Below are positions 4,080-59,559 of a stretch of 64,000 bases of DNA, one piece after another (positions within the stretch are counted from its first letter, which is position 1; every line of letters begins with the position of its first letter). Where the stretch lies: IMG/VR virus record IMGVR_UViG_3300036853_000446, positions 124,001 through 188,000 of that record, one strand, 5' to 3'. Under the pieces are notes generated by a model. It saw nothing but the letters and a program-made list of their open reading frames with translations, did not search any database and was not told the DNA's origin. The translations under genes and the position numbers were made by a program.

Positions 4080-4169
4080 CGGTGCGCAGTACACCGGAGA
4101 CGAGGCACCTTCCTGTTCAGCGCCGCGGGTTTAGCTTCGTGGAACGCGCCGCTACGGATTCACCCTCAT

Positions 4170-4724
4170 TTAGGTGCGGATAACACGGAGAGCGTCGAGT
4201 TGCTTCATTGTAGCATTCAGGTCTTCATACATGCGAATCGTCTGAGACGACGCACCCTGTGCGCGCAGAATGGTATCATGGTTGACGCCCTCGCCAAGAG
4301 CGGGCGAGGGGTCCTTCCATTCTGGCAACTCATGCGCCACGTCGATCATCCGCGAAACGTCGTGAAATCGATACTTGTGATGCACCTTCTCGAGAAGCTC
4401 GACGTCGTAATCCGATAGCTCGCTATCGCCAGGCTCCTGACCCGTCAGCATCACGTCGCATTCGTCGGTGCGAAAACACGCATTCCACGACTCAGATTGG
4501 GGTGCCTTGCCATCGATGTAGTCGAGGACCGTACTCGGTACAGGTCCGTTCTTTAGGTTGACCACCGAGCCGCCCGTGATGGGCATCCCCGTTTCCAACA
4601 GTGATTGGCGGTCGGCAAGGTGCAGTAATCCGAGCAGCTTCGTACGGTTCAGACGGCCGCCGGCCTTACACAGAAGGACCCCCGCGGCTTGCGCCGTTCG
4701 AAGCGGTTGAAAACGGAACTGCAT
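4170..4724 (-). CDS. Panacea/SocA-like (DUF4065) antitoxin-domain protein
   Basis: TKLLGLLHLADRQSLLETGMPITG..KNGPV, ELPEW motifs; SD GGGAGG. Confidence 0.8.
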   Translation of the reverse strand: MQFRFQPLRTAQAAGVLLCKAGGRLNRTKLLGLLHLADRQSLLETGMPITGGSVVNLKNGPVPSTVLDYIDGKAPQSESWNACFRTDECDVMLTGQEPGDSELSDYDVELLEKVHHKYRFHDVSRMIDVAHELPEWKDPSPALGEGVNHDTILRAQGASSQTIRMYEDLNATMKQLDALRVIRT

Positions 4725-4825
4725 GAAACCTCCCGTGTAATCTATGCGGTTTCGAAGGGAGCACAATGACCAAGCAGACGACGAAGCCATGCCCGCCGGT
4801 TCGGCCAGCCCTTTCCGCGCCGATG

Positions 4826-5032
4826 TCATTCAGCGAGCCGACGAAACAGCTCGGCATGCACGCAGAAGATCTTCTCTTTGGCGGCTTCAAAACGCGCCCG
4901 TTTCACAGCGTCCGCCCGGCTCGACTCCTCGTCGGATGGCTCGACCGGGCGCAGATTCGCGCCCCGGTCAGAGACCACGTGTGCGACCCCGAGCGAGCCA
5001 GGATCGGTGGGGGGTCGACTCGACGGTTTCAA
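4826..5032 (-). CDS. small hypothetical protein
   Basis: TTG start overlapping upstream stop (TTGA). Confidence 0.4.
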   Translation of the reverse strand: MKPSSRPPTDPGSLGVAHVVSDRGANLRPVEPSDEESSRADAVKRARFEAAKEKIFCVHAELFRRLAE

Positions 5033-5271
5033 GTCTTCCGCCTCAGCGCATTCAAAATGTGCATCACGTCGTTCCCGGTGGCGCCCGAGTAGAGGCGCCG
5101 CCCCGAGCGCGCGAGTTCTTGATCGCCTCCCACGGACTGACTCAGGAACGGATACGACGTCTCGTCTCCGCGCGAGATGTCCCATCCCTTGATTGCCCGC
5201 CACACGGCCTCGAATTGCGGCGACGCCAGGTCGGCTTGCGTTGGATCCGGGTATTCCGTTGAATCACTCAT
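5029..5271 (-). CDS. hypothetical protein
   Basis: MSDSTEYP start with GAAAGGAAAG SD; CGGTGTA motif upstream. Confidence 0.65.
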   Translation of the reverse strand: MSDSTEYPDPTQADLASPQFEAVWRAIKGWDISRGDETSYPFLSQSVGGDQELARSGRRLYSGATGNDVMHILNALRRKT

Positions 5272-5323
5272 ATCTTTCCTTTCAAATAAACAGACTTGTC
5301 GTTCGTTGTACACCGGGTTCGCC

Positions 5324-7279: not shown

Positions 7280-7289
7280 GGGAATCCTC

Positions 7290-8273: not shown

Positions 8274-9194
8274 TCAACCGCAGACTGAGGCCAGCGCGGC
8301 CTTCAGATGAAATGAGAGATTGATGGAAGACTGCGCGCGCTCTCGCAAGCTCCTCAACTCGGCGAGCAGTCCGTGCACCGCAAACCTTTTGAGCTGAGTT
8401 TGCAGACGACGAAGTGCATCGATGGCGTCCACGTTCATGACCTTGTTCGGAGCCACATCAATCACCGCGAGGTCCTGGAGCAGTTGCCGCAGGAAGCGGA
8501 TCGCCAGAGGCAGATCGGTCACGTCGTTCACTGCTGAAAACGTGCCGAACAAGTCTTTCGTCGCGGCCAAACTCAGAATGCCGATCATCTCATCTCTCAT
8601 GGTCAACTGACCGGACACGAGGCACCGTATGGCGCGTCCCAGCGAGCCCTCAGCGATACGCGCACACACAAGTGCTTTCGTCTCATCATCCGTGTATTGC
8701 CGCAGTTTGGACAGAATCAGTTCCTCAGGGATTCTTCGGTAGGAAACGACAGCGCATCGAGAACGGATCGTCGGAATCACGGTCTCGAGCTGCTCACTGA
8801 GCAAGAAGAAGCGCACCTTGGCGGGAGGCTCTTCCAGCACTTTCAACAAAGCATTTGCGGCCGCGCTCGTGAGCCTGTTCGCGCCGTCGATGACGAAGAA
8901 TTTCCACGGCGCCCATGACGGCAACGTTTGGGTCTCGTCGATCAAGCCCCTGATGGAATCAACCTTGATGTCCTTGTCATCTTCCACTTCAACAACACGG
9001 AAATCGGGGTGATGCCCGGCTTCCAACGCATAGTGCTGGCTCTCCTCGAAGACCGTTTTTGCAGCCTCGACGATCGACAGCCGCCGGCCCGTCCCCTCTT
9101 CGCCGATCAGAAGAAGCGGGAGCGCAAATGTCCCCTCGGCTACCTGTCGAAGGTAGAAGACTCCTTCAGGTTGTCCGAGCACTGACTCCAGCAC
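8274..9194 (-). CDS. holB: DNA polymerase III delta-prime subunit-like
   Basis: GEEGTGR, HPDF, AANALLKVLEEPP, TIRSRC. Confidence 0.9.
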   Translation of the reverse strand: MLESVLGQPEGVFYLRQVAEGTFALPLLLIGEEGTGRRLSIVEAAKTVFEESQHYALEAGHHPDFRVVEVEDDKDIKVDSIRGLIDETQTLPSWAPWKFFVIDGANRLTSAAANALLKVLEEPPAKVRFFLLSEQLETVIPTIRSRCAVVSYRRIPEELILSKLRQYTDDETKALVCARIAEGSLGRAIRCLVSGQLTMRDEMIGILSLAATKDLFGTFSAVNDVTDLPLAIRFLRQLLQDLAVIDVAPNKVMNVDAIDALRRLQTQLKRFAVHGLLAELRSLRERAQSSINLSFHLKAALASVCG

Positions 9195-9355
9195 AATCAG
9201 CCTCCAATGAATCGTCGACACCGGATGGTTCGACGCGGACGAGCATCACGACGCGGCGATACGCCCCGCGGATCTCACGGACGAAGCGATACGGCTCGCG
9301 GCCGCTCGGGTGCATGGCTTTGCTCGTACACCGAGCGAAGCACCTTCATCGCGAA

Positions 9356-10808: not shown

Positions 10809-12404
<1,596 letters not shown>

Positions 12405-12794
12405 TCAATTTCCCTTCCGAGTACATGGAATGCCATACACCGCCGCGACCTCCACGGGATCGAGGTCCTCGGGATCAGCTATTGTTGACTGCGCGTAACG
12501 GGAAACAGACACCATCGTGGGCCTTGGAGACGAGAAATCCCAACGCGAGCCGGGCGGCGGGGGCGGATGGCCTTTCAACCACAGGTGGCCATAGACGGCG
12601 TAAAGAGCCATCCGTCTATCGACGTGTTCGACCGCGTGCAGAACGTCTTGCGTGGGCTCGACAGATTCGACGCGCGCAAACCACCCGCCATCCAGCCATT
12701 CGCAGACGAATCTCGAACGTTCGGGTATATGAGCGACAATCGCGCGCTCGATTTCGTCGTCGGTCCAAGAGAGGAGTTCGTCAGGCGGTTGCAA
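12405..12794 (-). CDS. hypothetical protein
   Basis: Abuts groEL start; co-directional. Confidence 0.6.
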
Positions 12795-12888: not shown

Positions 12889-14400
12889 TTACTTGCCCGA
12901 CGCGGCGGGCTCCACTTCTACGCTCGGGTCTTTGGTCGCGGGCGTCGGGATGACGACGTTGGTCGCAGGGTTCGGCCCGACGAGAGGCTCGGAAGTTGAC
13001 TCGCTCGTGAAGGCCGTCGAATACGCCGCCTGCGCCGAATTCCCGAAGGCCCCATTGCACGTTGCCTTCATGTTCTGGAGTTCGACCTGTGCGACCGAGT
13101 CGTAGCTCGCGACGCCCGCGGAGCGGAGAATACCCTGGCCCATGCTCTTGAGGTATCCTCGGCTCCCGGTGTAGCTCGCTGCATTGCCCATGAAATCGGC
13201 CATGTTGGAGGCCACGTGGGCCTCTGCCACAAGACCTTTGAGCTGCAGGCCTCGCGAGAAATCTGCCAGCTTCGACTGAGCCACCCGATAATCTCCACGA
13301 TTGGCGTCGGCTTCGGCCTCGCGCTGCACGACCGCGAGCTGGTGCAAGGAGACGATTTCGTCGACCGTAGGGGTAGGCGCTTTCTGCGCTTCGTCGGGAC
13401 TCACGAACCGCATCTTGGCGGCCGCCGTCGCCTCCTCCGAAGCCTTTTCCCCCTCCTGCGTGATCCGGCGACAAGTCGCCTTCACGTTGAAGAGCGTGAA
13501 ATCCCGCGGCAGCGCCTTGTCCTGCTTCTTGACGCTGCACTCGAGCACGATGTGCCGCGTCTCTTCGGCCAAAATATCGCCAACCTCGATCGTGACCTCG
13601 GTGATCTCCGCGACACTGGTGACGCCCGTGACACCGGCGGCCGGCGCCTTGTCGGGCCCGAGCAGAGTCACGACCTTCTCGACGGTGTGGCCGTTGCGTG
13701 GCTCGATGACGAGACGGAGGTCCGAGGCGTAGGTCGAGAGCAGGCCACCCAACTCCCGCCCAAACGCCGCCAGAGCGTCGTCCGCATTCTGCACGTAGGC
13801 GTAGTTTCCCTTGCCGAGCTGGCTGAGTTCGGTCAGCAAGTCTTGATCGCACGTGGTTCCCTCTCCGTACCCGAAGAAGCTCATCGAGTGCGAGCCCACG
13901 TGTTTTGCCACGAGACCCTTGATGCTGGTCGCATCGGTGACGCCCGATGTCGGCTGCCCGTCGGTAAAGAAAATCGCTCGCTGCAGAACGTTCGGCGGCA
14001 AGTCGAGGTCGCCGATCTTCGCGAGTGACGACACGATGCTGTCCGAAAAGTTCGTCCCCGCGCTGGCCCACAACTCGTCAATCGCCTTCAGCAGGCGCGT
14101 CTTGAGTTCGGGCGTCACGGGGCCCGGCTTGACCATGGTGCAGACCTGGGAATTGAACGTGATGAGGCCCGAATAGTCCCCCACCTTGAGTTGCTCGACG
14201 AGCTTTCTGCACGCCTGCTTGGCATACTCGAGCTTCCGTCCCTGCATGCTGCCCGAGACGTCGACAACGGGCAGAATGCAGATCCTCGGCCGCCGACTGA
14301 CCCAGTCGATGGCCGGCGCCTCGACGGTCAAGAGCAGATGAACCGTGTTGTCCTTCTCGTGATCAACCGTCTCGTAATCGAACTGCGCTGACAATTTCAT
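12889..14400 (-). CDS. von Willebrand factor A domain protein
   Basis: MIDAS DVSGSM, AGTN, FFTDG, FFGYG. Confidence 0.9.
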   Translation of the reverse strand: MKLSAQFDYETVDHEKDNTVHLLLTVEAPAIDWVSRRPRICILPVVDVSGSMQGRKLEYAKQACRKLVEQLKVGDYSGLITFNSQVCTMVKPGPVTPELKTRLLKAIDELWASAGTNFSDSIVSSLAKIGDLDLPPNVLQRAIFFTDGQPTSGVTDATSIKGLVAKHVGSHSMSFFGYGEGTTCDQDLLTELSQLGKGNYAYVQNADDALAAFGRELGGLLSTYASDLRLVIEPRNGHTVEKVVTLLGPDKAPAAGVTGVTSVAEITEVTIEVGDILAEETRHIVLECSVKKQDKALPRDFTLFNVKATCRRITQEGEKASEEATAAAKMRFVSPDEAQKAPTPTVDEIVSLHQLAVVQREAEADANRGDYRVAQSKLADFSRGLQLKGLVAEAHVASNMADFMGNAASYTGSRGYLKSMGQGILRSAGVASYDSVAQVELQNMKATCNGAFGNSAQAAYSTAFTSESTSEPLVGPNPATNVVIPTPATKDPSVEVEPAASGK

Positions 14401-15615: not shown

Positions 15616-16197
15616 TCAACGATGGGTGGGTTGATGCACCTGTCGAGGAATGGAGCCCAAAGTTTCGACCAGAGCCTTGTTGGCCTGGCGCTTGGCAGGG
15701 TCGAGATTCTTCGACACCTTCTGATAGTAGGGATGCTCGAGCCACTCCGCGTACGGCGTGTTGCCCCTAATTTTATTGCACTTTTTGCACGACGAAAGAA
15801 GGTTGTCTTTTGTACTCGGGCCTCCATGCTCCCAAAGGATGAGATGGTCGACGGTGAGGGGCACGTGGTCATTCCCACAATATTCGCAGCTAAATTTGGC
15901 GCGCCGGTACACCTCCCACGCCACGCCCTGCGAGATGTGGCGTTGACTCTTCCGGACGATTGCCTTGGTAATGGTGCCGTCAGAAGCCTTCGACAGGACC
16001 TGCGTCTCGAGCAGATCCGTCTGCCGGAGAAACCGCGTCCAGTCGTCGAGGTTCATGTCGAGATTCACGACGGGAAGCCCATCGGCATTCTCATCAGGGA
16101 ACAGGGCGAGATACACCTTGCCGCCACCGATGTATGCGACGCCGGCCATCAGGATCGTGTGCCCGAACTCGAGCAGCCCGATTTCATCAATTCGCAT
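15616..16197 (-). CDS. HNH endonuclease with N-terminal extension
   Basis: CEYCG..TVDHL..HGG..NLLSSCKKCN. Confidence 0.85.
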   Translation of the reverse strand: MRIDEIGLLEFGHTILMAGVAYIGGGKVYLALFPDENADGLPVVNLDMNLDDWTRFLRQTDLLETQVLSKASDGTITKAIVRKSQRHISQGVAWEVYRRAKFSCEYCGNDHVPLTVDHLILWEHGGPSTKDNLLSSCKKCNKIRGNTPYAEWLEHPYYQKVSKNLDPAKRQANKALVETLGSIPRQVHQPTHR

Positions 16198-16539: not shown

Positions 16540-17049
16540 CTAATCAAAAAGAGAAGCGTCTAAGTCCTCCATGTCGACCTTGTGGGCGTTGCCCACGGCG
16601 ATGACCTCCCGCAGCAAGGCAAGCTCGCGATCGATCTGCTCCGTCCGGGCGCTCGCGTCATCGATCGAAATCTGCCGCTCTTGCCGCACGACGCCCGGGT
16701 CTTGCGTGCGCTCGTCGTCGAAGAGTCCCCGCTCTTTGATGGTCGCGGCGCTGCGCCACGTTTTCTCGATGCGCCCGAGGCCACCGATTCGCTTGACGCA
16801 TTCGAGCAGAGTCACTCGCCCCTTGCCCGGTACCTCGACACGCACCGCCAGATTGTAGCGCGTTTGCGCAACCTGAAGGATCGAGATATTCTCTTCCGCA
16901 TCTCGAACCCTCTTGATCACCTGGTCCGGCGTCGCCTTGACCTCGTCCGGAAACTTCTTCAACGAATCCTTGAACTGACTCGCCGCCGTCTCGCGCCGCA
17001 GCGTCTGTCGACGCAGGGCTTCACGCAGCTTATACCCTGTTACTTCCAT
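16540..17049 (-). CDS. Coiled-coil protein, DIP1984-like
   Basis: KLREAL N-terminus, Q..QTRYN..V pattern; family assignment from memory; CGGTGTA upstream. Confidence 0.6.
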   Translation of the reverse strand: MEVTGYKLREALRRQTLRRETAASQFKDSLKKFPDEVKATPDQVIKRVRDAEENISILQVAQTRYNLAVRVEVPGKGRVTLLECVKRIGGLGRIEKTWRSAATIKERGLFDDERTQDPGVVRQERQISIDDASARTEQIDRELALLREVIAVGNAHKVDMEDLDASLFD

Positions 17050-17151
17050 AATTTCCTCTCCACGAACCGGGGCTCTCGATCTGCAATACACCGGCGGAGG
17101 GGGAGTCCAGATCCCCCTCCGCCGATTTGTTCCGAAGCCCAGCGCGAGCCC

Positions 17152-18710: not shown

Positions 18711-18767
18711 TCTATCGAAACACAGCCGTGCACTGATTACCGCCGCGCGGTGTAAGGGCCTTGTCAG

Positions 18768-19538
18768 ATGCCTCGTGATCGACTCCGCCCATTCTTCTGC
18801 TATTTCGGTGGCAAGTGGCGTGAGGCTTTGAAAAGCTATCCTGAACCTCGATACGGGACCATCATCGAGCCCTTCGCGGGTGCGGCGGGATTTGCGGCGC
18901 GCTACGCAACTCGCAAAGTAATCCTGTGCGAGATTGACCCCATCATCGCAGCAGTATGGCGGTACCTAATCAAGGTGACGGCCAAAGAGATCTTATCTCT
19001 GCCCGATCTCGTATCGGAAGAGACAGTGGACAATTTGATAGTCAGTCAGGAGGCCAAATGGTTGATTGGCTTTTGGCTCAATAAGGGCACTTCAGGTCCT
19101 CGCAAGAGTCCCTCGACATGGATGCGATCGAATGTTCGGCCGAAGTCATACTGGGGCGCTCATATTCGACAGATCCTGGCATCGCAGGTTGATTCCATCC
19201 GGCACTGGGAAATCCACAACTGCAGCTACGTTGATTGCCCGACCCCACTCGAAGCAACTTGGTTCGTCGACCCTCCCTACGAGGTCGCGGGGCAAGCCTA
19301 CAGATTTGGCTCCAAACAGATCGACTATCAGCATCTCGGTGATTGGTGCCAAACAAGACCCGGACAAGTCATCGTTTGCGAGAACGAAGGAGCAACCTGG
19401 CTTCCTTTTCAGGACCTCGCAAGTGTGAAGGCGAGCCCCAGATCCATTGCGCCAAACCGCCGCTCCAAGGAGGTTTGTTGGTTGAGCACGTTTGAAGAGG
19501 ATGCATACCTGCAAGCCTTCATGCGAGGCGTCGTATGA
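18768..19538 (+). CDS. Dam-like N6-adenine DNA methyltransferase
   Basis: YFGGK, EPFAG, FVDPPY. Confidence 0.85.
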   Translation: MPRDRLRPFFCYFGGKWREALKSYPEPRYGTIIEPFAGAAGFAARYATRKVILCEIDPIIAAVWRYLIKVTAKEILSLPDLVSEETVDNLIVSQEAKWLIGFWLNKGTSGPRKSPSTWMRSNVRPKSYWGAHIRQILASQVDSIRHWEIHNCSYVDCPTPLEATWFVDPPYEVAGQAYRFGSKQIDYQHLGDWCQTRPGQVIVCENEGATWLPFQDLASVKASPRSIAPNRRSKEVCWLSTFEEDAYLQAFMRGVV

Positions 19539-21851: not shown

Positions 21852-21904
21852 GAGCCCCCGGTACACCGGAGGCCCATGCCCTCTGTTCGATCCCCCCTAC
21901 GCCT

Positions 21905-24111: not shown

Positions 24112-24121
24112 ATACACCGAG

Positions 24122-26428: not shown

Positions 26429-26482
26429 GTGAGGATGTACACCGCGTCCCGCCGGTAATCCATTTGTCGTTCCATACGGATC

Positions 26483-28990: not shown

Positions 28991-29014
28991 GGGACCTGTT
29001 ACACCGGCGCATCG

Positions 29015-29685: not shown

Positions 29686-29718
29686 AAAACTATCGATTAA
29701 CGGTGTAACCAACACCCG

Positions 29719-31053: not shown

Positions 31054-31075
31054 CCCGAGCCATACACCGACGAGC

Positions 31076-32403: not shown

Positions 32404-32436
32404 TCTCGGCAGAAGGTGCTGGTGTATCTGCGACCG

Positions 32437-35328: not shown

Positions 35329-35350
35329 GGTGCCTTTCACGTACACCGAG

Positions 35351-39703: not shown

Positions 39704-39717
39704 AAAAGGCCACCTCA

Positions 39718-39969: not shown

Positions 39970-39989
39970 TTGGTGAAGATTACACCAGG

Positions 39990-43996: not shown

Positions 43997-44452
43997 CTCT
44001 CGAGTTCACCACGATATCGAGAGGGGATGTTCAGGAGGTCGGTCACGACCTCACACGACCCCGCACCGCTGGAGGTAGGGGCGGACACCTATCCTTGAAG
44101 AAAGGGTGCTCTTCAACGTTTCACGATTCACAACAAGTTACTCACAGTGACACCACACCCACACTGGGGTCTCACGGTCAAATCGCGCTCACCGAGAATC
44201 CTCAACCTTTGGGTTAACACCAGGTGCGAAAAACGCCCTCACCGTGGAGAGAACCTCCAAATAGGTCAGGCCGCGTCGCGTGACGCTGTCATCGGCTCAT
44301 CCAGTAGCCATCGATGCCGGTCGTTCTCTCATGACCGTGTTCGTCGAGATAGGAGAAGTACCGAGCCTTTACCTCGAGAACGGTCTGTCGCTCGACGTGG
44401 ACTTTGCCCGGGTCGCCGTGGCCATGCCGGTAGTCGCTCTACAGGTTCACGA

Positions 44453-46711: not shown

Positions 46712-47078
46712 TCGCGAGCACATATCCCGGATTTTACTCATCGATGACGAGGATCTCATCGTGCGAGCCGTGCGTCGGATGCTCGAGGCCGAGACTCAAT
46801 TCGAGATCTGCTCCGCCTGTGACGGTGAGACCGGCCTCGTGGCATTTGAAACGGAGCCCCCGTTCGACGTCCTGATCACGGACATCCATCTACCGGATAT
46901 GTCTGGCACCACGCTAGCTCGAAAGCTTCGCATTCTGAAGCCGGACCTGAAGATCATTTTCATGTCGGGCGCCATCCCAACCGATATCGATCCGTCGGCG
47001 GGAACCCTAACGAAGCCCTTCCGCCACGATGACCTGATGCACGCTTTGGAAAACGCTTTGGAGTCAAGACGTCTCTAG
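46692..47078 (+). CDS. Single-domain CheY-like response regulator receiver
   Basis: ILLIDDE, LITDIHLPDMSG, IIFMSG, TKPF; start uncertain. Confidence 0.88.
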   Translation: MATTATDREHISRILLIDDEDLIVRAVRRMLEAETQFEICSACDGETGLVAFETEPPFDVLITDIHLPDMSGTTLARKLRILKPDLKIIFMSGAIPTDIDPSAGTLTKPFRHDDLMHALENALESRRL

Positions 47079-48077
47079 GTATCGGGCCGCCACGCGCCGA
47101 CTCGCGTTCGTGCGACGGTCGATCAAGGTGGCCGCGTGCTCGAACGTGCTCGCGTCCCATTCGTCCCAGTGGGGTAAACTCGCCAAGGCCACCTTACGGC
47201 TTCTCAAGACCTCGAGGACCTGTTCCACGGCATCCTCGACCGTGGCACTGATGCCCTTCACGTCGCAGTCCGTGGAGAACTGCGCGTAGAAATCTCGGAA
47301 AGAGTCAATTATATCGCGGCATTTGAAGACGGCATCTTCTAGGCGCGACGGGACCACCGCGGCGTCGTCATCGCTACTGACCGAAAGGGCGAGCAGCTCG
47401 TTGAGGCGTCCCGACTCTTTATCGAGTTCCTTGTACACGTCCATATACTTGCCGAACTCCACGCAAAGGCTTGTCAGACCCACGACGCTGATCAGCTTTT
47501 TTGCCGCGGTCGTGCGTTTGCTCAAACCTTTCAGTTTGGAACTCGCCCGTGACGCCTGCTCCAAGACGGCTTTTGAGCCTCGGACGATGTCCTGCATGCG
47601 CCGCTGTCTCTTGCCGGTCGTCGTCTTGACGGCCAACTCCGCAAAGTCGTGCAGCTCGTCCACGGTGTCAGCAAAGTCGTCCTTGAGATATTCACGCAGA
47701 TCGACCCGCCAGGAAAGATAGAGATGGCTGATTTCTCTGACCGTCCTCTCGAAAGCGGTCGTGGCACGTTGCTTGGCCTCTTTGATGGTGGCCAAGTCGA
47801 TGCGCCGCTGACTCGTGTCCGTCCCCACCTCCGTACGGTCGTTGACCCGCTTGCCCTCGAGGACCTCTTTGGCCACGTTGATCTCGACCATCATCGTTGG
47901 GCTCCCACCGCGGTCGGGATGGTGCTCTTTAGCTTTCGATTTCCACGCCTTGTTGATCTCGGCATCCGAGGGGCTCGAGCCAGGCGGGAAGCCGAGCACG
48001 TCCTTGGCCTCCTCGAGCGTCATTGCCGTCCGGAGCCATCGGGCGGCGGTCTGGTAAGCGTCATGGCGGTGTGGCAT
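47064..48077 (-). CDS. DnaJ J-domain protein with AARWL leader and RVAARYL tail
   Basis: AKDVLGF..INKAWKSKAKEHHPDRGG. Confidence 0.85.
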   Translation of the reverse strand: MPHRHDAYQTAARWLRTAMTLEEAKDVLGFPPGSSPSDAEINKAWKSKAKEHHPDRGGSPTMMVEINVAKEVLEGKRVNDRTEVGTDTSQRRIDLATIKEAKQRATTAFERTVREISHLYLSWRVDLREYLKDDFADTVDELHDFAELAVKTTTGKRQRRMQDIVRGSKAVLEQASRASSKLKGLSKRTTAAKKLISVVGLTSLCVEFGKYMDVYKELDKESGRLNELLALSVSSDDDAAVVPSRLEDAVFKCRDIIDSFRDFYAQFSTDCDVKGISATVEDAVEQVLEVLRSRKVALASLPHWDEWDASTFEHAATLIDRRTNASRRVAARYLETS

Positions 48078-48864: not shown

Positions 48865-51843
48865 TCACTCTCCGCGGCCCATGGCGAAATCATGCAGGTC
48901 TTCCGCGTCCTTCTTCTCCTGGTCCTGCCGCATGACGATCTCGAGGCGCCGCACGGCCTCCGCGTGGTTCGTCGGGTCGCGCTCCATGCCGATGAAATGC
49001 ATCCCCTCGAGCACGGCCGCGTGGAGCGTAGTACCCGAGCCGGCGTACATGTCCAGCACCGTGCCGCCTTTTTGTGTGACGAGCTTGACCAACCATCTGA
49101 TGAGCGCCAAGGGCTTCAACGTGGGGTGTTGAATTTCGAACTCGCCGCAGCCGGCTTCTTTACGGTTGGCCTTCGGAATATAGCGGAATGGCACGCCGCC
49201 CTGCGCGTCGAACTGAGTAAAGAACCGATCCACGCCGCCCTCGTCCGTGAGCCGGGTTCCGGCTTTGAACTGAAAATCAGCCATGTCCGTTCCCCTTTCC
49301 GCTAAGCCCTTGTTTTCAGTCGAGCCACCATTCGGGTGATGTCCTGACTCGACCCCCTGCTCCCGTAGCGCCCTGACGGGGCATCCTTCCACGCAAATCC
49401 AGTCTTCTACCGTTTCCAGGCCGTCGGGACCCGCGTAGCGCTGACTAGGCGTTTCCTTGGGCTGCCACCCGTCGTCGTTCATTATTCCGAGGGCCTCTAA
49501 CCGCCGCTTGCCACCGGGTGGGGTTTTGACGTCCTTCAGCCCGACGCGCTCACAGCCCGGGGCGTGAATGAACACAGCGTTCGGAGGCCATCTGCCTTTG
49601 CTAGCATCCTCGTCGGATTTGTCGGCCTCGAACTGGGTGAAGAAGCGAGAAGCACCGCCGGCATCCTGGTACGTGACATGATCATGCGCAGCCTGTGCAC
49701 CATCTGAGAAGGCGCCATTCTTCCCCTCGTAATTGAAATCGACGTGAACTTCCGAGGGGTCGTTGTTTGGGGAAGTGTATGAGCTGCGACGCTCGCCGCT
49801 CTGATCGTCGAGGGCCTTCACCGGACATCCTTCCACGCAGATCCAGTCGGCCACTTCCTCCTTCCCATCGAATCCAGCGTAACCGAGTTCGTCGCCTTCG
49901 ATGATGTTGTCCCCGTGCCACCCCCCTGTGTAGCCTGCCTTTGTACGGCCTTTACCCGTACAAAGAGACTTAGTGGTCACACGCTTAATGCCGACGCGCT
50001 GGCACCCCGCTCGACCTTCAACGTCTGGGACGTGTTCGAATACGGCGTTCGAAGGCCACCTGCCTTTGCTCTGGTCCTCGTCGGGTTTGTCGGCTTCGAT
50101 TTGGGTAAAAAACCGCGAGGCGCCCCCCTCATCGTCGTAGAGGGGGCCCTGGGTGTTGTGACCGAGATCCCCTCGTGTGTAACCACCACCACGGCTGTAC
50201 GTGGTTGGATAGTTGCCCGAGGATCGCCGATTACCGCTCTGATCGTCGAGGGCCTTCACCGGACATCCTTCCACGCATTCCCAGGCCTCCGTCTCTTCAA
50301 GGCCGTCCGAACCAACGTGGCTCGTTGTCTGCTGGTACTCAAAGCTCCCGTAGACGACCCTCGAGGGGGCCACATACTTCTTGTCCGGTACAGGTTCGCC
50401 TTTGGCTGCCGCCGCATGTGAACCTTTGATCCTCTTCGACCCGATGCGCTGGCAACCCGGGCGTCCGTCAGCATCGGGGACGTGCTCGAGCAGGACGTTG
50501 CTCGGCCACCTACCTTTGCTCGCATCCTGAGAATCTGCCTCGATCTGCGTGAAGAACCGCGAGGCCCCGCCGGCATCCGCGTAGACTTTGCTCAGGTGCG
50601 TTCGCTCCCCGAGGAACGTGGACGTAGGGTTCATCTCCGTGCCCGGGTGCTCGTGGCTCACGTCCGGGTCCGCGCGCCCCGTCAGCGTGCTCGGCCGATC
50701 GCCGCTCATGGCGTCTAGGGCACGTACAGGGCATCCTTCGGCGCATTCCCAGGCCTCGACCGTTTCGTTGCCGTCGTCATCGCCATAGCCACCACCACGT
50801 TCCTGAACCTGTGGCTGCCAGCCATCGTCGTTCATTTTGCCCAACGCACTATGCCGACGAGTTCCCTGCATGATGGCCGCAACCTTTTTTGACCCGACAC
50901 GCTGGCAACTCTCGGAATGTTCGAGCACGACGTTGCTCGGCCACCTTCCGCCGGCCTTGACCTCGTTGGCGCCGCTGAGGTCGCTGTCGTTCTTCCACGA
51001 TTTATCCCGGCTGCCGCCCTTCTCACGGATGGCATCGACGCCCTTCTTGTGGGTCTCGAAATCTTCCTGCGAGGCGTGCCGCACGCGGGTGGCGTCGATG
51101 TTGAGCCCGCCCGTCCCGTGCTTCAGGACGTTCGACGCGAGCGTGCCCTCGAGCGGCTTGCGGAAGACCAAAATTGGCTCAAATGCAGGCTTGAGTCCAC
51201 TCCCCCACCCAGACCAATGTTTGGCCTCGTCGGATGCTGGCGCGTACTGGTGGTGATATTTCTCGACCTGCTCTGGGTCCTTCATCCAAGGCCGAGAGAA
51301 CCCCACAGCGTGAGGGCCCGATTCGGAGAGATTTACGACGCTAGAGTTGTTACCCCGATCAGCAAATTCCTCGTGACCCGGCTTGATCCCAACCAGCTGC
51401 GTGCGCGTCTTCCCGAACCGATTGTCGATGCCTTTGCTTATATCATGGCTCTTTGGCATGCCCTGACCCTGAATCCATTGCAATATCGGATAGTTACGAC
51501 CGATCGTGTCGCGGCATTCGAACCCCGCCATTCGAAGCCCGATGCTAATCAGGTCGAACGTTCTTGTTCCTCCGAACGAGAGCACGTGACCGCCGGGCTT
51601 GAGCACGCGGTAGACCTCGCGCCAAACGGCAACGCTCGGAATGCTCCATTTTTGGCCCATGAAGTCATTTCCAGTGTCGAGCGTGCATCCGAGCACGTAC
51701 GCAAAGATGTCCTCCGGCGACGGGTCCTTGTTCCCGAGCCCATATGGCGGATCTACAACGGTGGCATCTATTGAATCCGAAGGAAGGTCACGGAGAAGGT
51801 CGAGACAATCACCGAGAAGAATCTGATCGAGAGGGAGGTCCAC
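48865..51843 (-). CDS. Beta-class N4/N6 DNA methyltransferase, 992 aa, with internal repeats
   Basis: DPPYG N-terminal; HPTLKP..LDMYAGSGTT C-terminal. Confidence 0.9.
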   Translation of the reverse strand: MDLPLDQILLGDCLDLLRDLPSDSIDATVVDPPYGLGNKDPSPEDIFAYVLGCTLDTGNDFMGQKWSIPSVAVWREVYRVLKPGGHVLSFGGTRTFDLISIGLRMAGFECRDTIGRNYPILQWIQGQGMPKSHDISKGIDNRFGKTRTQLVGIKPGHEEFADRGNNSSVVNLSESGPHAVGFSRPWMKDPEQVEKYHHQYAPASDEAKHWSGWGSGLKPAFEPILVFRKPLEGTLASNVLKHGTGGLNIDATRVRHASQEDFETHKKGVDAIREKGGSRDKSWKNDSDLSGANEVKAGGRWPSNVVLEHSESCQRVGSKKVAAIMQGTRRHSALGKMNDDGWQPQVQERGGGYGDDDGNETVEAWECAEGCPVRALDAMSGDRPSTLTGRADPDVSHEHPGTEMNPTSTFLGERTHLSKVYADAGGASRFFTQIEADSQDASKGRWPSNVLLEHVPDADGRPGCQRIGSKRIKGSHAAAAKGEPVPDKKYVAPSRVVYGSFEYQQTTSHVGSDGLEETEAWECVEGCPVKALDDQSGNRRSSGNYPTTYSRGGGYTRGDLGHNTQGPLYDDEGGASRFFTQIEADKPDEDQSKGRWPSNAVFEHVPDVEGRAGCQRVGIKRVTTKSLCTGKGRTKAGYTGGWHGDNIIEGDELGYAGFDGKEEVADWICVEGCPVKALDDQSGERRSSYTSPNNDPSEVHVDFNYEGKNGAFSDGAQAAHDHVTYQDAGGASRFFTQFEADKSDEDASKGRWPPNAVFIHAPGCERVGLKDVKTPPGGKRRLEALGIMNDDGWQPKETPSQRYAGPDGLETVEDWICVEGCPVRALREQGVESGHHPNGGSTENKGLAERGTDMADFQFKAGTRLTDEGGVDRFFTQFDAQGGVPFRYIPKANRKEAGCGEFEIQHPTLKPLALIRWLVKLVTQKGGTVLDMYAGSGTTLHAAVLEGMHFIGMERDPTNHAEAVRRLEIVMRQDQEKKDAEDLHDFAMGRGE
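49200..50950 (-). repeat. Four tandem ~140-150 aa modules in the methyltransferase
   Basis: GRWP(S/P)N x4, WxCxEGCPV x4, GGASRFF x3 plus GGVDRFF. Confidence 0.9.
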
Positions 51844-51880
51844 CCCGGCTCATACACCGGCGGGCGCGCGCCACCGTTCG

Positions 51881-53530: not shown

Positions 53531-54826
53531 ATGAACAGAAAGGCAATGGCATTGAAGGTCGCGCGGGCGTGGTTGCGACGTGCTGCGGTCGTGCCCGATG
53601 ACCTCTTTGATCGATATTCACATCAATTGAAGGGGATCCTTTCCGGTCCCACCTCAGGGCCACGCAGCGTCGCACAGATGATTCGCAAGGGCATCGAGCC
53701 GTTGTTCCATCAGTTCGTGCATGATCTCCGCGAGACTGGGCTTACACGAAACCTCCTCGCGCATGTCGTTCGCAATCTCAATGCCGACCTGAAGATCCTG
53801 AAAGAGATTGAGACGAACCTCGAAAACCTGCACATCGCAATGACCTGCCCGCAGGGTGACGACAAATATTTGCCCGAGCACGAGATCAAGTGCCGCCTTG
53901 CCAGTGTGTTGAAAGATTGGTTCGACAACAGCGTCAAAACAATCGACCAAGCCCTTTTAGAGAACTGGTCGGTACGCTCCATAGGTGCAACCGGCCTCGT
54001 TGACCAGATCCTGAAGCAGGCCAGCCCGAAAGAATTGTCGATGCTCGGGGCTGTTGCGAACGGAGATGAGTCGACGGAGGTCCTTCAGCAACTGCGCGCC
54101 TTCAACGTGCGCGCTGTCGACCCCCTCGCCAAGAAACTCGTCATCAAAAACTGGCTCGGCGACGACAATTGGTGGCTCGGCCTGTTTGACCAAGTGAAGC
54201 GTAATCTCACCCACGAATCCGCCACCGATAGACCCGATGAGCAATTCGACCTTCACGGGATGAAGGTCGTCGTCGACGACGATACGGTGAACGCGGCTGA
54301 TATCCGTGCCTATGTTAAATACTTCGATATCGCCTATCAGAGCCTGAAGTCGAGGCGACTCCACTCGGCGTGGTACGGCGACATACTGATCGATTGCAAA
54401 GGCTGCGGGGGAGTCATCGATACGGGCGCAAATATTGGTGGCCACTTCAACGTCGGAAAGGATCAGGTCACGATCTTTGCTCGACCCGGCCCGACGATCA
54501 GCTACATTGTGGTACATGAGCTTGGACACCGGTACTGGTTCAAGAGCTTGTCGCGAGGCCAGCGCGGCAAGTTCGAATCCCTCGTAAAGGTGAAGGGCGA
54601 CGGCGCCAAGCCGGTCCTTCCCGTCTCTGACTACGGTGCTTCAAACATCGACGAAGCGTTTGCCGAGGCATTCGCCTGGTATGTCCTCCGCCGGAAGATG
54701 AACGCCGATCAAGAGGCTTCATTCAAGGCGGTCCTGCTCGACAAGGATCGCCGCTCCGTCACGTCCAAAACGGCGTCGAGATCGACGAGCGCCGCAAGAC
54801 GAGTCAGACGACCTCGATCTTCCTGA
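53531..54826 (+). CDS. Zincin metallopeptidase (LF/MPTase-like) with KVARAWL leader
   Basis: VVHELGHRYW, SDYGASNIDEAFAEAF. Confidence 0.8.
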   Translation: MNRKAMALKVARAWLRRAAVVPDDLFDRYSHQLKGILSGPTSGPRSVAQMIRKGIEPLFHQFVHDLRETGLTRNLLAHVVRNLNADLKILKEIETNLENLHIAMTCPQGDDKYLPEHEIKCRLASVLKDWFDNSVKTIDQALLENWSVRSIGATGLVDQILKQASPKELSMLGAVANGDESTEVLQQLRAFNVRAVDPLAKKLVIKNWLGDDNWWLGLFDQVKRNLTHESATDRPDEQFDLHGMKVVVDDDTVNAADIRAYVKYFDIAYQSLKSRRLHSAWYGDILIDCKGCGGVIDTGANIGGHFNVGKDQVTIFARPGPTISYIVVHELGHRYWFKSLSRGQRGKFESLVKVKGDGAKPVLPVSDYGASNIDEAFAEAFAWYVLRRKMNADQEASFKAVLLDKDRRSVTSKTASRSTSAARRVRRPRSS

Positions 54827-55604
54827 CCTTCACATTCCGTGGGTTGAACACGGCGATCTCCGGCACGCCTTGGACGAGGTTGGTGCCGTAGAAAAAGACC
54901 GAGTCATACCCTTTTGATCGCGCTTTACGAGCCTGGCTCGTGCTCTTCGTGACCAGCGGATTGCTGACAGTCACCGCCACCGTATAGACCTTCGGGCGGT
55001 ACGTTTTAGAATCCAGGCCGAGCGCGTCGAGGTTGTCATAAACATAGTCGGGAGCGCCCGTAGAGGAATTCATCAACTCGTCGAGCACCGAGTCCGTCTC
55101 GGACCCGAGGGGCTTCACTTTGCTGCCGATGATGTATGCGGCCAGGTCGCTCACGGCGTTGGGGTCGACGCCGAGGTAGTCCTCGAAGCCGACGAGGTCG
55201 ACATGTCCCTCTCCCGGGCCCGGATTCTCTCGCCAGAAACCGGCATCCTGGAGGGCGCGCGTCCACCCGCCGTCTCCGTGCTCGACGAGCATCTCGAGGA
55301 ATCTGCCGGCGGCCGGTTTCCTCCGCTTCAGGTCCGCGACGATCGTGGGCGAGAAGCCTATGTTACGGTTCGCGTAGGCGTACTCGCCGGCAACCCGCTT
55401 GCTCGGGGTCAGGAAGATCCCTCTGCCGTAATAGCTGTCGACCAGTTCGTCGCGGCTCTGACCCATGTCGAAGCTGCGAAAGAGCCGCGTCGTGCCGTGG
55501 TAAAGGGTCACCGGATGGCCCGTGCGAAGGCCCTCCAGATGGTACTCGACGAGAGGATCTACGGTCTCGCGCGCGACCCGGCGATCGTAATCGTAGGCCA
55601 GCAC
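54804..55604 (-). CDS. ADP-ribosyltransferase-like protein with YDYDRR leader
   Basis: LYHGT, GRGIFLT, A.EYA, GYDSV, EIAVFNP. Confidence 0.75.
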   Translation of the reverse strand: MLAYDYDRRVARETVDPLVEYHLEGLRTGHPVTLYHGTTRLFRSFDMGQSRDELVDSYYGRGIFLTPSKRVAGEYAYANRNIGFSPTIVADLKRRKPAAGRFLEMLVEHGDGGWTRALQDAGFWRENPGPGEGHVDLVGFEDYLGVDPNAVSDLAAYIIGSKVKPLGSETDSVLDELMNSSTGAPDYVYDNLDALGLDSKTYRPKVYTVAVTVSNPLVTKSTSQARKARSKGYDSVFFYGTNLVQGVPEIAVFNPRNVKVRKIEVV

Positions 55605-56601: not shown

Positions 56602-57720
56602 TTACGCGAGCTGAGACTGCTGCTGCTCCTGCTCTTTGGCCCGGCGTTTGATGTCGACCAAACTCTCTGCGGAGATTGCCTCACTCGCCAGCGTGTCTTC
56701 CCACGCGAGGTCAGCGTCATCCCGGCGAAGCGTCCGCACTCGTTGGTTGTCTTGAATGCAGGCGCCGTCGTTCAAGACGATCTCTTTATTGGATTTACGA
56801 TCGAGGGTCCGGAACAGGTTCCGCAGGTTATTCTCTACGATGCGCTGAAAATAGCGGGCAAAATTGACCTCCGTGACGCAGGCCGACGGCAGCACCCGAA
56901 CGCCGCGCTCTTTGAAATACCCGGACTCGTCGAGGACTCGAATATCGTCGCTGCGGTAGACGGCGTCGAGGGTCGTCGAGGCCCCCTTCACGGGGTTGGG
57001 CGCCTTGTCATAAGTCGCCATCATGGCTTGCCACTCGGGCCAATCGATACCGAGAAAGTCGAGCACCTCCTCCGTATCGAGCTGTGCGGGCAGGCGCTTG
57101 GCCGCCGATCGCATGAACTTCATGACAATATTGCCGCCAAAGATCTTGGTCCAATTGTCGCTGATCGCATCCTCGAGGGTCGTCCCGTATTTGAGGCGAT
57201 AACCGATGATCTTGGCGAGCTTTCCCGCGTATCTGGCCTCGAGTTGCGTCGGGGTTTGCGGCAGGTGCAGTGGCACATCGAACACGAAACCCTGCTCGAG
57301 TTCTTCGACAAGTTTCTTCGTCTCGGCAACGATAAAAACATCCAACCCGGGTATCACCGATTTCAGGAAGCCCTTCTTGGCCGCCCGAATAAACACCAGC
57401 TCCCGGGACTCGAGAAGGAGATCGACATCAGAGAAACGATACCTGCTCGAGCTGAGCGAGTGCGAGCCCTCGACGGGTACCGAGAGGGCCTCCCAGCGCC
57501 AGCGAATTGTGTTTGACCAGGTCGAGAGGGTGATCCCGAGATAGGCGATGGCCTGATCGCGCGTAATGATCTCCGGGCGCCGAAACGTGCGAAGCACCCC
57601 TCGGTACCAGAGATGGTGGGCGATCTGCCACGTGCGCCAAACGTCGCAGGCGGCCGCCTTCTCGATGGTCGCCCCGTAGAGCCTCAACAACTCATCAACG
57701 TCCCTCGGCAGACCGCGCAT
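56602..57720 (-). CDS. Hypothetical regulator: two HTH-like repeats and sigma2-like segments
   Basis: DQAIAYLGITLSTW and EEVLDFLGIDWPEW; FARYFQRIVENNLRNLFR. Confidence 0.5.
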   Translation of the reverse strand: MRGLPRDVDELLRLYGATIEKAAACDVWRTWQIAHHLWYRGVLRTFRRPEIITRDQAIAYLGITLSTWSNTIRWRWEALSVPVEGSHSLSSSRYRFSDVDLLLESRELVFIRAAKKGFLKSVIPGLDVFIVAETKKLVEELEQGFVFDVPLHLPQTPTQLEARYAGKLAKIIGYRLKYGTTLEDAISDNWTKIFGGNIVMKFMRSAAKRLPAQLDTEEVLDFLGIDWPEWQAMMATYDKAPNPVKGASTTLDAVYRSDDIRVLDESGYFKERGVRVLPSACVTEVNFARYFQRIVENNLRNLFRTLDRKSNKEIVLNDGACIQDNQRVRTLRRDDADLAWEDTLASEAISAESLVDIKRRAKEQEQQQSQLA

Positions 57721-57883
57721 CGGTGAATGACCTCCCGTGGGTGGTGTACCAACCCACATGTTCTTCACCCCTCCGAGCCCCACGACGATGTCCTTCGACC
57801 GTCGCGTTCCCACTTGTCACCGGGATGATGGTGAGCACCACACGTATCCGAACTCGTCGGAGCCCGTCAACACAAACTCGAGC

Positions 57884-58447
57884 ATGAGTGAAATCGACAA
57901 GGTCATGGCAGAGGGACGCGCACTCACGCGATCACTCGCGGTGATCGAAACAGGGGCCTCGATCGCGGACGCACGACTCTCCTGTTTGGTTTGCCTCGAG
58001 CAGCATGTTGCCAACAGTGTGGAAACCATTGCGATCGACTGTGCGCTTCGGAAGATCTGTGGATTGGCTTCGACAACATACAAAGACGCACACCTCTCCG
58101 AGGCGCCCACCTCTTTGGAAGAGTTTCTCCTCCACGAGGGAGTGGTTCGTTGGCTCGAGTGGGCGACCAATGAACCGTCGACCCTCATGTTGGTCGAGCC
58201 CCAGGGAACCCGGAGCGTCAGTGTGTTGGACCGAATGGCCCTGACGCAGTGGATCGAGGGCGTGGAGCATCTGCGGCGCGGCAACGAAACGGAGGCGCAG
58301 CGGTATTTCCGCCGCGCCGTCACGCTCGGACGATCCTACGGGACGCCGAGCAACCCGGTCATCCAGTGGACGTACGCCGCGAGTTTCTTCCCCGAGCTTG
58401 ATTCCAACCCTCAGGACAGTTCTCCACAGACTGTGGGGGACTTGTGA
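57884..58447 (+). CDS. hypothetical protein
   Basis: MSEIDK start; alternative ATG at 57758 lies 10 nt after TGGTGTA. Confidence 0.6.
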   Translation: MSEIDKVMAEGRALTRSLAVIETGASIADARLSCLVCLEQHVANSVETIAIDCALRKICGLASTTYKDAHLSEAPTSLEEFLLHEGVVRWLEWATNEPSTLMLVEPQGTRSVSVLDRMALTQWIEGVEHLRRGNETEAQRYFRRAVTLGRSYGTPSNPVIQWTYAASFFPELDSNPQDSSPQTVGDL

Positions 58448-58502
58448 TCTCACGTCTGGTCGATCTTTAGGTCCCAAGTCTTTAGGGACTTAGATCTCTA
58501 GA

Positions 58503-59036
58503 TCACTCGGCAGCCTCGGCGTAGCTCACTGTCGACTCGGCGTTTGAGACGTTGAGATCACGCCGTGCAACGCGCCGCCGTCTCTGAGCTTCGGCGTTTT
58601 GTCGACGGCGCTTTTCGAGACGCTCCGGGTCGGCTTTGATCTTCGCCCAACGGCTGGCGTCATATCCCGTTTCGCGAGCCCACTTGCGCTTGTTGATCTT
58701 GTCGAAAGGCTCAAAGCCGAAAAGGCATCTGCCCAGCGAACCGAGATCTTTTGCGAGAAGCCGCCCCTGTCGATAAGCCTTCACTTTCTGCCAGGCGATA
58801 TCCTTTTCCTCTTCGGTCGCGATCCGTGTCAAACCCAAATAGTATCCGCTGATTTCGTACCAGATCTCGACGGGAAGCTCGATGAGCGGGGTGTCCCTGA
58901 ACAAACTCTCGAGGCGCGCGATTTGCTTCGTCTGCCGTTCCGCTCTCGGGGTCTGGCTGTCCTGGACGACAAATCGTGGGGTGCCCATGAATCTTCGAGG
59001 TTGTCGCTCGGTTTTTGGAGTAGGCTTCGATCGCAT
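58503..59036 (-). CDS. basic hypothetical protein next to repeat region
   Basis: Arg/Lys-rich C-terminus. Confidence 0.6.
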   Translation of the reverse strand: MRSKPTPKTERQPRRFMGTPRFVVQDSQTPRAERQTKQIARLESLFRDTPLIELPVEIWYEISGYYLGLTRIATEEEKDIAWQKVKAYRQGRLLAKDLGSLGRCLFGFEPFDKINKRKWARETGYDASRWAKIKADPERLEKRRRQNAEAQRRRRVARRDLNVSNAESTVSYAEAAE

Positions 59037-59077
59037 TGTTCGTTCCTCGAACCGGCGGTCCCGCAAAGGCCGCCGGT

Positions 59078-59296
59078 TCACTTTTGTGATTGGTGTTTCT
59101 GTCCACGGAGATCCGTCGTCATGTGCGCCCGCACGCCGTCAGGCCCAACTGCAGCGAGCTGACGGAGGCCCATCCGAAACGCGAGACGAGCGAGACGGTG
59201 CCGGTGAAGGTAGGGGTGTTCGTCGGCGAGCTGGTCCATCAGTCGCGTCAGCTCAGCGTCGAGCTTCAGCGATTGGCGTTCGGTGGAAGTGCGCAT
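59078..59296 (-). CDS. RHH-like DNA-binding protein
   Basis: QSLKLDAEL..LMDQL..RHRLARLAF; CGGTGTA 11 nt upstream. Confidence 0.6.
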   Translation of the reverse strand: MRTSTERQSLKLDAELTRLMDQLADEHPYLHRHRLARLAFRMGLRQLAAVGPDGVRAHMTTDLRGQKHQSQK

Positions 59297-59559
59297 GTCC
59301 ACCGGTTACACCGAGTCCGCGGACCATTCTTTCGAGCACACGCACTTCGATAAACCCGAACGCCCATCTCCTCAGAGGTGTGTGGACGTCATGGGACGCC
59401 GCGCTCGACTGAACATCACCGGAGGCCACCCGGTCCCCTGGGTACGTCATCGAGCCGATCCGTTATCGACGAGGCCGGTCAATCACCATGTCGACGAGCT
59501 GGCACGGCCAAAACGGATTTTCTCCAGCCTCTTCAGCCGGCATTTCCCGGCCACTCGGC

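Follow-up and report, generated by a model that had tools for sequence, protein, structure and literature searches.

The heptamer CGGTGTA recurs close upstream of start codons in a 64,000-nt stretch of DNA (the window) that forms bases 124001-188000 of IMG/VR virus record IMGVR_UViG_3300036853_000446, a 407,634-bp linear record from a soil metagenome (hereafter G000; 60.5% GC, completeness estimate 86%). We consider it likely that CGGTGTA forms the core of a −35-less promoter; this 408-kb phage would use it at about 75 places, and its relatives would do the same. Judging from the sequence, many replication-type genes are probably made from it as mRNAs without a leader. What is known of huge phages comes almost entirely from metagenomes; a motif this sharp aids annotation, since it marks out transcription units and true start codons, along with many small genes, directly across a whole clade of 300-450-kb soil phages.

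CGGTGTA copies cluster directly upstream of start codons

A search of the window for YGGTGTA returned 19 sites (16 CGGTGTA and 3 TGGTGTA), 14 on the minus strand and 5 on the plus strand, against an expectation of 4.69 ± 2.19 from 100 dinucleotide shuffles, none of which reached 19. An earlier reading of the window made from its letters alone (the sequence-only reading) had described such copies on the coding strand close to gene starts, and the observation holds, with both its number of copies and their coordinates borne out. Thirteen sites have an ATG or GTG that opens an open reading frame (ORF) of 49-992 aa 9-13 nt downstream; the copy at 35342, with ATG at 13 nt, is listed apart. At three sites (5309, 12436 and 17087) the motif is followed by a leader of 31-37 nt carrying a Shine-Dalgarno-like purine run. 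When the 18 ORFs behind window sites were scored with a Markov coding model, 14 came out on top of their six frames.

The same bias holds for the whole of G000, where CGGTGTA occurs 101 times versus 40 for the reversed word, with about 40 copies expected by chance. Intergenic DNA makes up 23% of the genome, though 79 of the 101 copies are intergenic (p ~1e-31), and CGGTGTA ranks first among all 7-mers for this bias. An ORF start lies 8-14 nt past the motif at 55-59 of the 101 sites, compared with 7.4% for 419 permuted 7-mers, and the spacing has its mode at 9-10 nt (18 sites at 9 nt, 16 at 10 and 10 at 11). The genome-wide count by position and strand that the sequence-only reading had suggested thus yields a distribution that is not random. 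Positions 2-7 of the motif (GGTGTA) are nearly intolerant of change, since single-base variants lose the association with starts; at the first base C is favoured, next T and next A. Independently, a de novo search upstream of predicted G000 genes returned GGTGTA as the top hexamer (32 observed versus 2.5 expected). Two minus-strand AGGTGTA copies may be weak members of the class: one at 43992-43998 has a GTG 10 nt downstream that opens a 109-aa ORF with an ambiguous coding signal, and one at 15908-15914 lies 29-35 nt ahead of an HNH nuclease gene.

The motif is conserved among large relatives

A megablast search of a phage collection gave no match, and nothing in that collection is close at the DNA level. 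With the 766-aa protein encoded behind site 21862 as query, we recovered 13 related large phage contigs at 43-50% protein identity; a same-clade relative is a 404-kb NCBI assembly. The relatives G002 and G003 (the latter complete, 447,761 bp) were examined whole or almost whole. CGGTGTA is 2-4 fold more frequent than the reversed word in G001, G002, G003, G005, G006 and G007; by the same comparison it is not enriched in G004, G008, G010 and G012, and its enrichment is marginal in G009 and G011. Its placement is conserved as well, with a start 8-12 nt past the motif at 80 of 137 sites in G003 (mode 9) and 9-11 nt past it at 52 of 113 sites in G002 (mode 10). Measured from the final A of the motif to the ATG or GTG, a spacing of 9-11 nt accounts for 51 of 64 start-proximal sites in G000, 85 of 110 in G003 and 70 of 78 in G002.

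Orthologues of the 766-aa gene illustrate how the distance can vary. The motif lies 9 nt away in G005, 10 nt in G000, about 37 nt in G002 and about 75 nt in G001, and G003 has the variant CGGTGTC 27 nt upstream; every long leader among these orthologues contains a Shine-Dalgarno sequence. The leaderless style appears restricted to a subclade, because G004 (376,674 bp, 51% GC), which has the 766-aa gene and a sigma region-4 protein, lacks both the motif enrichment and the sigma-like family described below. We found no comparable leaderless motif in G004; it has strong GGAGGTGA Shine-Dalgarno ribosome sites instead.

The upstream flank holds no −35 element

Neither the flanks of 53 G000 sites nor those of 252 sites pooled from three phages contain information upstream of the base that directly precedes the motif, at which C is weakly preferred. 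The sequence-only reading had noted GAAC or GAAA 16-20 nt upstream of several copies and likened the arrangement to the −35/−10 architecture seen with extracytoplasmic function (ECF) sigma factors. This part of it is not supported: GAA(A/C) 12-22 nt upstream occurs at 19% of sites versus 9% of controls in G000, 6% versus 13% in G003 and 9% versus 10% in G002, which is control level in two of the three genomes, and it is not part of the CGGTGTA element. Some motif-led divergent gene pairs are only 30-39 nt apart, so there is no space for a −35. CGGTGTA lacks the AAC-type −35, the 16-17-bp spacing and the CGT-type −10 of ECF promoters, all of which are found in a second promoter class (see below), and like extended −10 promoters it needs no −35. 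A generic sigma-70 consensus scan of the window stayed at chance level, and hairpins or terminators were not enriched just upstream of the motif sites.

Back-to-back copies mark a probable transcription signal

Across three genomes, 17 divergent gene pairs have start codons 30-75 nt apart, and two motifs set back to back take up the gap, with 8-12 nt between each of them and the ATG it serves; some of these motifs overlap as TACACCGGTGTA. No other promoter fits between such start codons, which argues that the motif itself is the transcription signal. Genes led by it mostly lack ribosome-binding sequences: a Shine-Dalgarno-like run precedes 2 of 35 motif-led genes versus 33% of all genes and 14% of random positions. 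The earlier description of a coding-strand, promoter-like element that leaves no room for a Shine-Dalgarno sequence and implies leaderless or near-leaderless mRNAs is supported. About a dozen further intergenic G000 sites with long leaders do bear Shine-Dalgarno-like runs. Of 132 tRNA genes, 7 have the motif on the same strand no more than 35 nt upstream, compared with an expectation of about 1, and in two of these cases the distance is exactly 11 nt. Within the window, tRNA genes directly follow the motif-led ORFs at sites 17087, 29000, 31063 and 39981, which suggests that they are co-transcribed with the ORFs ahead of them.

Several details of the surrounding bases resemble bacterial promoters. 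In G002 the motif runs on as TATGnT: of the bases past its end, the first is T, the second G and the fourth T (66% T at +4). With the A of ATG taken as +1, that last T would occupy −7, as in a normal −10 hexamer. In each of the three genomes C is favoured at −1, just ahead of the ATG; RNA polymerase prefers a pyrimidine at −1 and a purine at +1, and the C is thus consistent with transcription starting at the ATG. Upstream of the sigma-like gene of G005, TTGACC is followed after 12 nt by TGGTGTA, which places a canonical −35 exactly 17 bp before the TA and points to −10 recognition of the host primary-sigma type. The layout of CGGTGTA also agrees with a TA at −12/−11 and a purine start about 7 nt past the hexamer.

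From these features we infer the start site, the leaderless state and the reader as follows. The TA would sit at −12/−11 of the bacterial holoenzyme and CGGTG would occupy the −17 to −13 ‘extended −10’ zone. A gap of ten bases from the motif A to the start codon would then make the A of ATG +1. Transcription would start 10-11 nt past the motif A, at the first base (A or G) of the start codon, giving an mRNA without a 5' leader or Shine-Dalgarno sequence that would be translated by the leaderless route; a motif lying farther upstream would yield an ordinary Shine-Dalgarno leader. Genes driven in this way would include those for replication, nucleotide metabolism, DNA modification and chaperones, as well as numerous small ORFs and, probably, any tRNA genes behind them. 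The enzyme would be the host multisubunit polymerase, its likeliest reader a host primary-type sigma, perhaps after a phage factor removes the need for a −35. One prediction is that the hosts translate leaderless mRNAs efficiently, which would narrow the host search.

A second promoter-like class and candidate readers

G000 contains a second, bipartite and ECF-like class (class 2), GGATCAAA ... CCGTACTC, with 16-17 nt between GATCAA and GTAC (GGATCAA-N16-GTAC) and an ATG 7 nt later, a placement that again suits leaderless starts in G000 as in the relatives. It has 24 clean copies versus 5 for the reversed control, all of them outside the window at G000:C1 about 210,600-330,000 and 387,700-392,900. 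The corresponding class reads CCGAAC-N16-CGTAGT in G002 (ATG after 6 nt, about 30 copies) and GTATAGA-N15-GCGTTAC in G003 (ATG after 6 nt, about 10 copies).

We searched for proteins that could read either class. No phage RNA polymerase was detected in G000 by PF00940 or PF00562 (the genome is 86% complete, and the PF00940 control matched nowhere), and the DFDGD catalytic motif of multisubunit polymerases is absent from the ORFs of G000 and G003; the core polymerase is thus presumably that of the host. The window encodes a divergent ECF-like sigma of 372 aa (56602..57720, −), in which a region-2-like domain is split by a winged-helix insert. The G000 form has no region 4; it carries an additional winged-helix module at the N-terminus. 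Searches of Pfam and PHROG with the protein itself gave no match, and the Sigma70_r2 profile gave only a 13-bit chance match on G000. Sigma70_r2 does match the G002 orthologue (27% identity), at 29.3 bits where 24 is the cut-off, and TIGR02937 is matched by the orthologue in G001. In an AlphaFold model of the 372-aa protein (pLDDT 84), residues 150-314 align to more than 25 sigma region-2 domains with Z scores of 5.5-7.6, a range in which helical bundles can match by chance; Foldseek against PDB and a profile search of PDB sequences returned nothing. An alignment of five orthologues contains region 2.1/2.2-like and 2.3/2.4-like helices with the winged-helix insert between them, and the G001, G002, G003 and G005 orthologues have a region 4-like C-terminal helix-turn-helix. 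The protein has 20 metagenomic relatives at 42-63% identity, all unannotated, and a search of viral contigs by peptide patterns added none.

The class 2 promoter precedes the sigma-like protein's own gene in G002, and a promoter ahead of its own sigma gene is the usual ECF autoregulatory layout. Because class 2 varies with the sigma, precedes its gene in G002 and contrasts with an invariant CGGTGTA, we conclude with moderate confidence that the ECF-like sigma of the window reads class 2 rather than CGGTGTA. Upstream of the sigma-like gene itself (window ~57846-57875, −; also in G002, G003 and G005) stands TTGAC(G/T/C), a gap of 17-18 bp and TA, which looks like a host-type promoter of an early gene; G000, G002 and G003 have it as TTGAC(G/T)-N18-TA. 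As a general early class, TTGACK-N18-TA had no genome-wide enrichment.

A second candidate factor is a 238-aa sigma region-4 protein (G000:C1 107861-108577, L082:1117-1833, −; Sigma70_r4 2.3e-12), whose gene adjoins a 5'-3' exonuclease gene. It has a second helix-turn-helix and no region 2, and its model matches region 4 of many sigmas with Z up to 10.1. The protein is highly conserved: among its 513 relatives many lie on 300-490 kb contigs, and identity among G000-G003 is 46-54%; it also occurs in G004 and G008, both of which are without the motif. Comparison of gene contents gave 40 proteins common to G000, G002 and G003 and absent from G004 as candidate readers. The clade-specific proteins scanned (topoisomerase IB-like, dCTP deaminase, AAA ATPase, DUF1848 and peptidase-like) were rejected, as none is transcription-related.

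Alternative readings of CGGTGTA

The ECF-like sigma bears directly on one alternative, which follows the proposal of the sequence-only reading that a phage sigma factor reads the motif. Here CGGTGTA would supply the −10 half of a bipartite, ECF-type promoter, and the product of 56602-57720 would be its reader. The window does encode this sigma-like protein, its orthologues match Sigma70_r2 (G002) and TIGR02937 (G001), and its model resembles region 2. In addition, all five genomes with the family are motif-rich, and three complete genomes without it (G004, G011 and G012) have no clear enrichment. This co-occurrence is confounded by shared ancestry, however, and the structural scores fall within the chance range given above. 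The 252 sites have no −35. A truly bipartite class with a CGT-type −10 is present separately in each phage, and it is this class that shifts as the sigma shifts, and that precedes the sigma gene in G002, whereas CGGTGTA stays constant. We therefore regard the ECF reading as unlikely.

The motif could instead work in RNA, as a non-Shine-Dalgarno ribosome-binding element at a fixed distance from the start codon. Its 9-11-nt spacing is like that of Shine-Dalgarno sequences, and motif-led genes lack the latter. Such a role would, however, push both promoters of each divergent pair into the neighbouring coding regions. The motif is not GGAGG-like or purine-rich, lies 24-94 nt upstream of some genes that have a separate Shine-Dalgarno sequence, and precedes tRNA genes above chance, and the TATGnT extension and TTGACC-N17 context are promoter features; a ribosome-binding role is accordingly very improbable. 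The divergent pairs pose the same difficulty for a processing or cleavage signal that yields leaderless mRNAs, or for an operator of a phage regulator that overlaps unrelated promoters. Strict conservation and the two copies directly after tRNA 3' ends (24113 and 35342) would suit these explanations, but no second conserved element is present as the real promoter and hairpins are not enriched beside the sites, and we judge them to be similarly far-fetched.

Some observations also weigh against a promoter that is read by a host primary-type sigma and yields leaderless mRNAs. T at the would-be −7 is avoided in G000 (0/40) and G003 (6%), which sets the motif apart from the −10 hexamers of primary sigmas. 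No base separates the TG from the TA (GGTGTA), a shift of one from the classical TGnTATAAT register, so that the motif departs from extended −10 promoters in this respect. Strict invariance over seven bases is also what one would expect of a dedicated factor more than of a housekeeping sigma. Sites 1 nt before tRNA-His and 5 nt before the G003 tRNA-Gln misfit the geometry; at tRNA-His the usual geometry would place the start inside the tRNA. Four small ORFs downstream of window sites give an ambiguous coding signal, and our own Markov-model gene calls span 78% of G000. The sequence of the record was found in its source DNA run only and in no RNA run, and the chaperonin relatives, at 45-48% identity to every phylum, carry no taxonomic signal for the host.

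We still favour a −35-less promoter, and the question of its reader divides more evenly. That a host primary-type sigma reads TA plus CGGTG, possibly with a phage factor that makes the −35 dispensable, is a proposal on which we are evenly balanced; as a speculation, the 238-aa sigma region-4 protein is a candidate for this −35-relieving factor. It is rather less probable that a dedicated phage factor other than the ECF-like sigma reads CGGTGTA. Equally tentative is a non-canonical, clade-conserved split set of initiation factors, for example one in which a stand-alone sigma region-4 protein would displace or replace host region 4 and act together with a region-2-type module. If this were true, its promoter grammar would use −17 to −11 only, ignore the −7 T and be tied to leaderless translation. 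The split-factor set, the host-type promoter of the sigma gene and the ECF-like class would then make up a three-tier programme that can be read from megaphage sequence. The motif in any case supplies a defined template along with candidate factors, namely the ECF-like sigma with a split region 2 and the region-4-only protein.

Motif-led genes in the window and their timing

The window encodes an NAD-dependent DNA ligase, a chaperonin, a vWA protein, an HNH nuclease, a dCMP deaminase and two methylase-like proteins, as well as 30 tRNA genes that lie within 16248-40650, every one on the minus strand. The CGGTGTA at 4090..4096 (−) stands 10 nt from the ATG of a 94-aa ORF (3795-4079; coding score 21.4, best of six frames) that runs into the DNA ligase gene (1889-4042). 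The copy at 5309..5315 (−) has a 37-nt leader with a purine-rich Shine-Dalgarno-like run before an 80-aa ORF (5029-5271), and that at 9327..9333 (−) has an ATG at 11 nt and a 49-aa ORF (9166-9315) of ambiguous coding signal. A 31-nt leader with Shine-Dalgarno-like GGAAGGG separates the copy at 12436..12442 (−) from the chaperonin gene (10809-12404; Cpn60 7.7e-63). The copy at 13167..13173 (+) is antisense within the vWA-domain gene (12889-14400) and is probably a chance copy. At 17087..17093 (−), the motif precedes a 37-nt leader with GGAGAGG, a 169-aa ORF (16540-17049) and then tRNA-Leu; a 13-bp GC-rich hairpin at 17092-17124 adjoins this copy upstream, resembling a terminator followed by a promoter.

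Farther along, CGGTGTA at 18748..18754 (+) has an ATG at 13 nt that opens a 256-aa ORF (18768-19538) with a weak D12 methylase match, and at 21862..21868 (−) an ATG at 10 nt opens the gene for the 766-aa conserved phage protein (19551-21851, phrog_2426). The copy at 24113..24119 (−) lies between tRNA-Pro and tRNA-His, 1 nt before the latter. The next copies lead a 70-aa ORF of ambiguous coding signal (site 26438..26444, −; ATG at 9 nt; ORF 26216-26428), the dCMP deaminase gene followed by tRNA-Arg (29000..29006, −; GTG at 9 nt; 28541-28990), a 152-aa ORF (29701..29707, +; ATG at 11 nt; 29719-30177) and a 92-aa ORF followed by five tRNA genes (31063..31069, −; ATG at 9 nt; 30775-31053). TGGTGTA at 32420..32426 (+) has an ATG at 10 nt and a 313-aa ORF (32437-33378). 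CGGTGTA at 35342..35348 (−) comes directly after tRNA-Ala, with ATG at 13 nt and a 62-aa ORF (35140-35328), and TGGTGTA at 39981..39987 (−) leads an 84-aa ORF (39715-39969; ATG at 11 nt) and then tRNA-Asn. The remaining sites precede the 992-aa N6/N4 DNA methylase (CGGTGTA 51853..51859, −; GTG at 9 nt; 48865-51843), a 229-aa ORF divergent from the sigma-like gene (TGGTGTA 57742..57748, +; ATG at 9 nt; 57758-58447) and a 72-aa ORF of ambiguous coding signal (CGGTGTA 59307..59313, −; ATG at 10 nt; 59078-59296).

Most of the gene assignments in the sequence-only reading stand: groEL (a Cpn60 match behind a 31-nt leader), the dCMP deaminase, the 992-aa methylase and, more weakly, the D12-methylase-like ORF. 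The large vWA gene is not confirmed: CGGTGTA is missing from the sequence directly upstream of 12889-14400, and no vWA match was obtained for the 766-aa gene that follows site 21862. Further motif-led genes in G000 encode a helicase (46307) and an ATPase that adjoins the DNA polymerase gene (372233). There are no start-proximal copies in the baseplate, tail lysozyme, endolysin and portal region of G000, and nearly all listed copies in G003 lie within its first 260 kb. CGGTGTA thus fits an early or middle class, as had been proposed: helicase, ATPase, dCMP deaminase, methylases, ligase operon, chaperonin and tRNA region are motif-led, and the baseplate/tail/portal block is without the motif. 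By eye, we saw no third (late) motif in the structural block.

Accessory features of the record

Unusual accessory genes for a phage are found in the window, with an ART-PolyVal ADP-ribosyltransferase domain at 54804-55604 (−), a MotA/ExbB proton-channel domain at 62651-63763 (−) and a DnaJ-domain gene at 47064-48023 (−). Elsewhere, G000:C1 has seven CRISPR-like arrays, with 47 repeats of two related 36-nt types and 39 spacers at a period of ~73 nt, including those at 250,724-250,980; 259,833-260,521; 265,625-266,318; 291,605-292,869; 293,976-294,160; and 311,637-311,786. The largest array begins just 3 nt past the end of a 480-aa ORF (290160-291602), for which a Cas12f1-like TNB domain gave a weak match of 21.8 bits, under the cut-off. 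RNA-guided transcription through such a Cas12f-like protein was considered and rejected, as none of the 39 spacers corresponds to a promoter region of the phage itself; the spacers had no match in G000 or three relatives.

Comparison with known promoter systems

In their survey of such huge phages, Al-Shayeb et al. (PMC7162821) describe sigma factors, CRISPR arrays and numerous tRNAs and do not report promoters. Our literature search for the CGGTGTA motif returned primer matches only, and we found no paper linking huge phages to leaderless genes.

ECF sigma promoters combine a GGAAC-type −35, a 16-17 bp spacer and a CGT-type −10. CGGTGTA differs in having neither the −35 nor the CGT core, although the same genomes do hold a class of this kind, 6-7 nt before the ATG, along with an ECF-like sigma. 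The late promoters of T4 (TATAAATA) are −10-only elements read on the host core polymerase by gp55 with gp33 and the sliding clamp. They share with CGGTGTA a single short invariant −10-region element that is used many times without a −35. T4 late mRNAs have leaders, however, and the genes here are for replication and nucleotide metabolism rather than structure. No gp55-like protein turned up here, where no search was aimed at gp55 homologues.

Leaderless promoters of Actinobacteria and Deinococcus have a degenerate TANNNT about 7 nt before the start codon and keep the −7 T. The geometry from TA to start codon, the weak or absent −35 and the mixture of leaderless and Shine-Dalgarno-led genes are alike, but CGGTGTA has seven invariant bases, mostly upstream of the hexamer. 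The frequency of leaderless genes is treated in PMC4633059.

The closest likeness is to Thermus phages (the middle/late extended −10 class of P23-45, late promoters of Lalka27a, and YS40), which have a phage-specific conserved −10 motif, no −35 and leaderless transcripts, with the start at a fixed short distance downstream, on the start codon's A or G, and with back-to-back divergent promoters. Lalka27a late promoters have an invariant TAGGGT with starts six bases downstream and mostly leaderless transcripts, and oppositely oriented promoters fill its short divergent intergenic regions (bioRxiv 10.64898/2026.04.20.719267). In P23-45, gp39 makes the −35 dispensable at extended −10 promoters (PMC7403470). 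The host polymerase is thought to be re-aimed by a phage factor in these phages (bioRxiv 10.64898/2026.04.20.719267; PMC7403470), and a similar idea is proposed here. There are differences: the conserved bases of CGGTGTA lie upstream of and include the TA, while the rest of the hexamer, its downstream half, is unconstrained; two of three genomes avoid T at −7, and the starts are predicted from sequence. The phages here are also uncultured soil phages of 300-450 kb with about 60% GC. The layout of a −10-only promoter with a leaderless mRNA would thus extend from Thermus phages to unrelated and much larger ones; the arrangement is known from Thermus phages, while the CGGTGTA consensus and the phage group that carries it are new.

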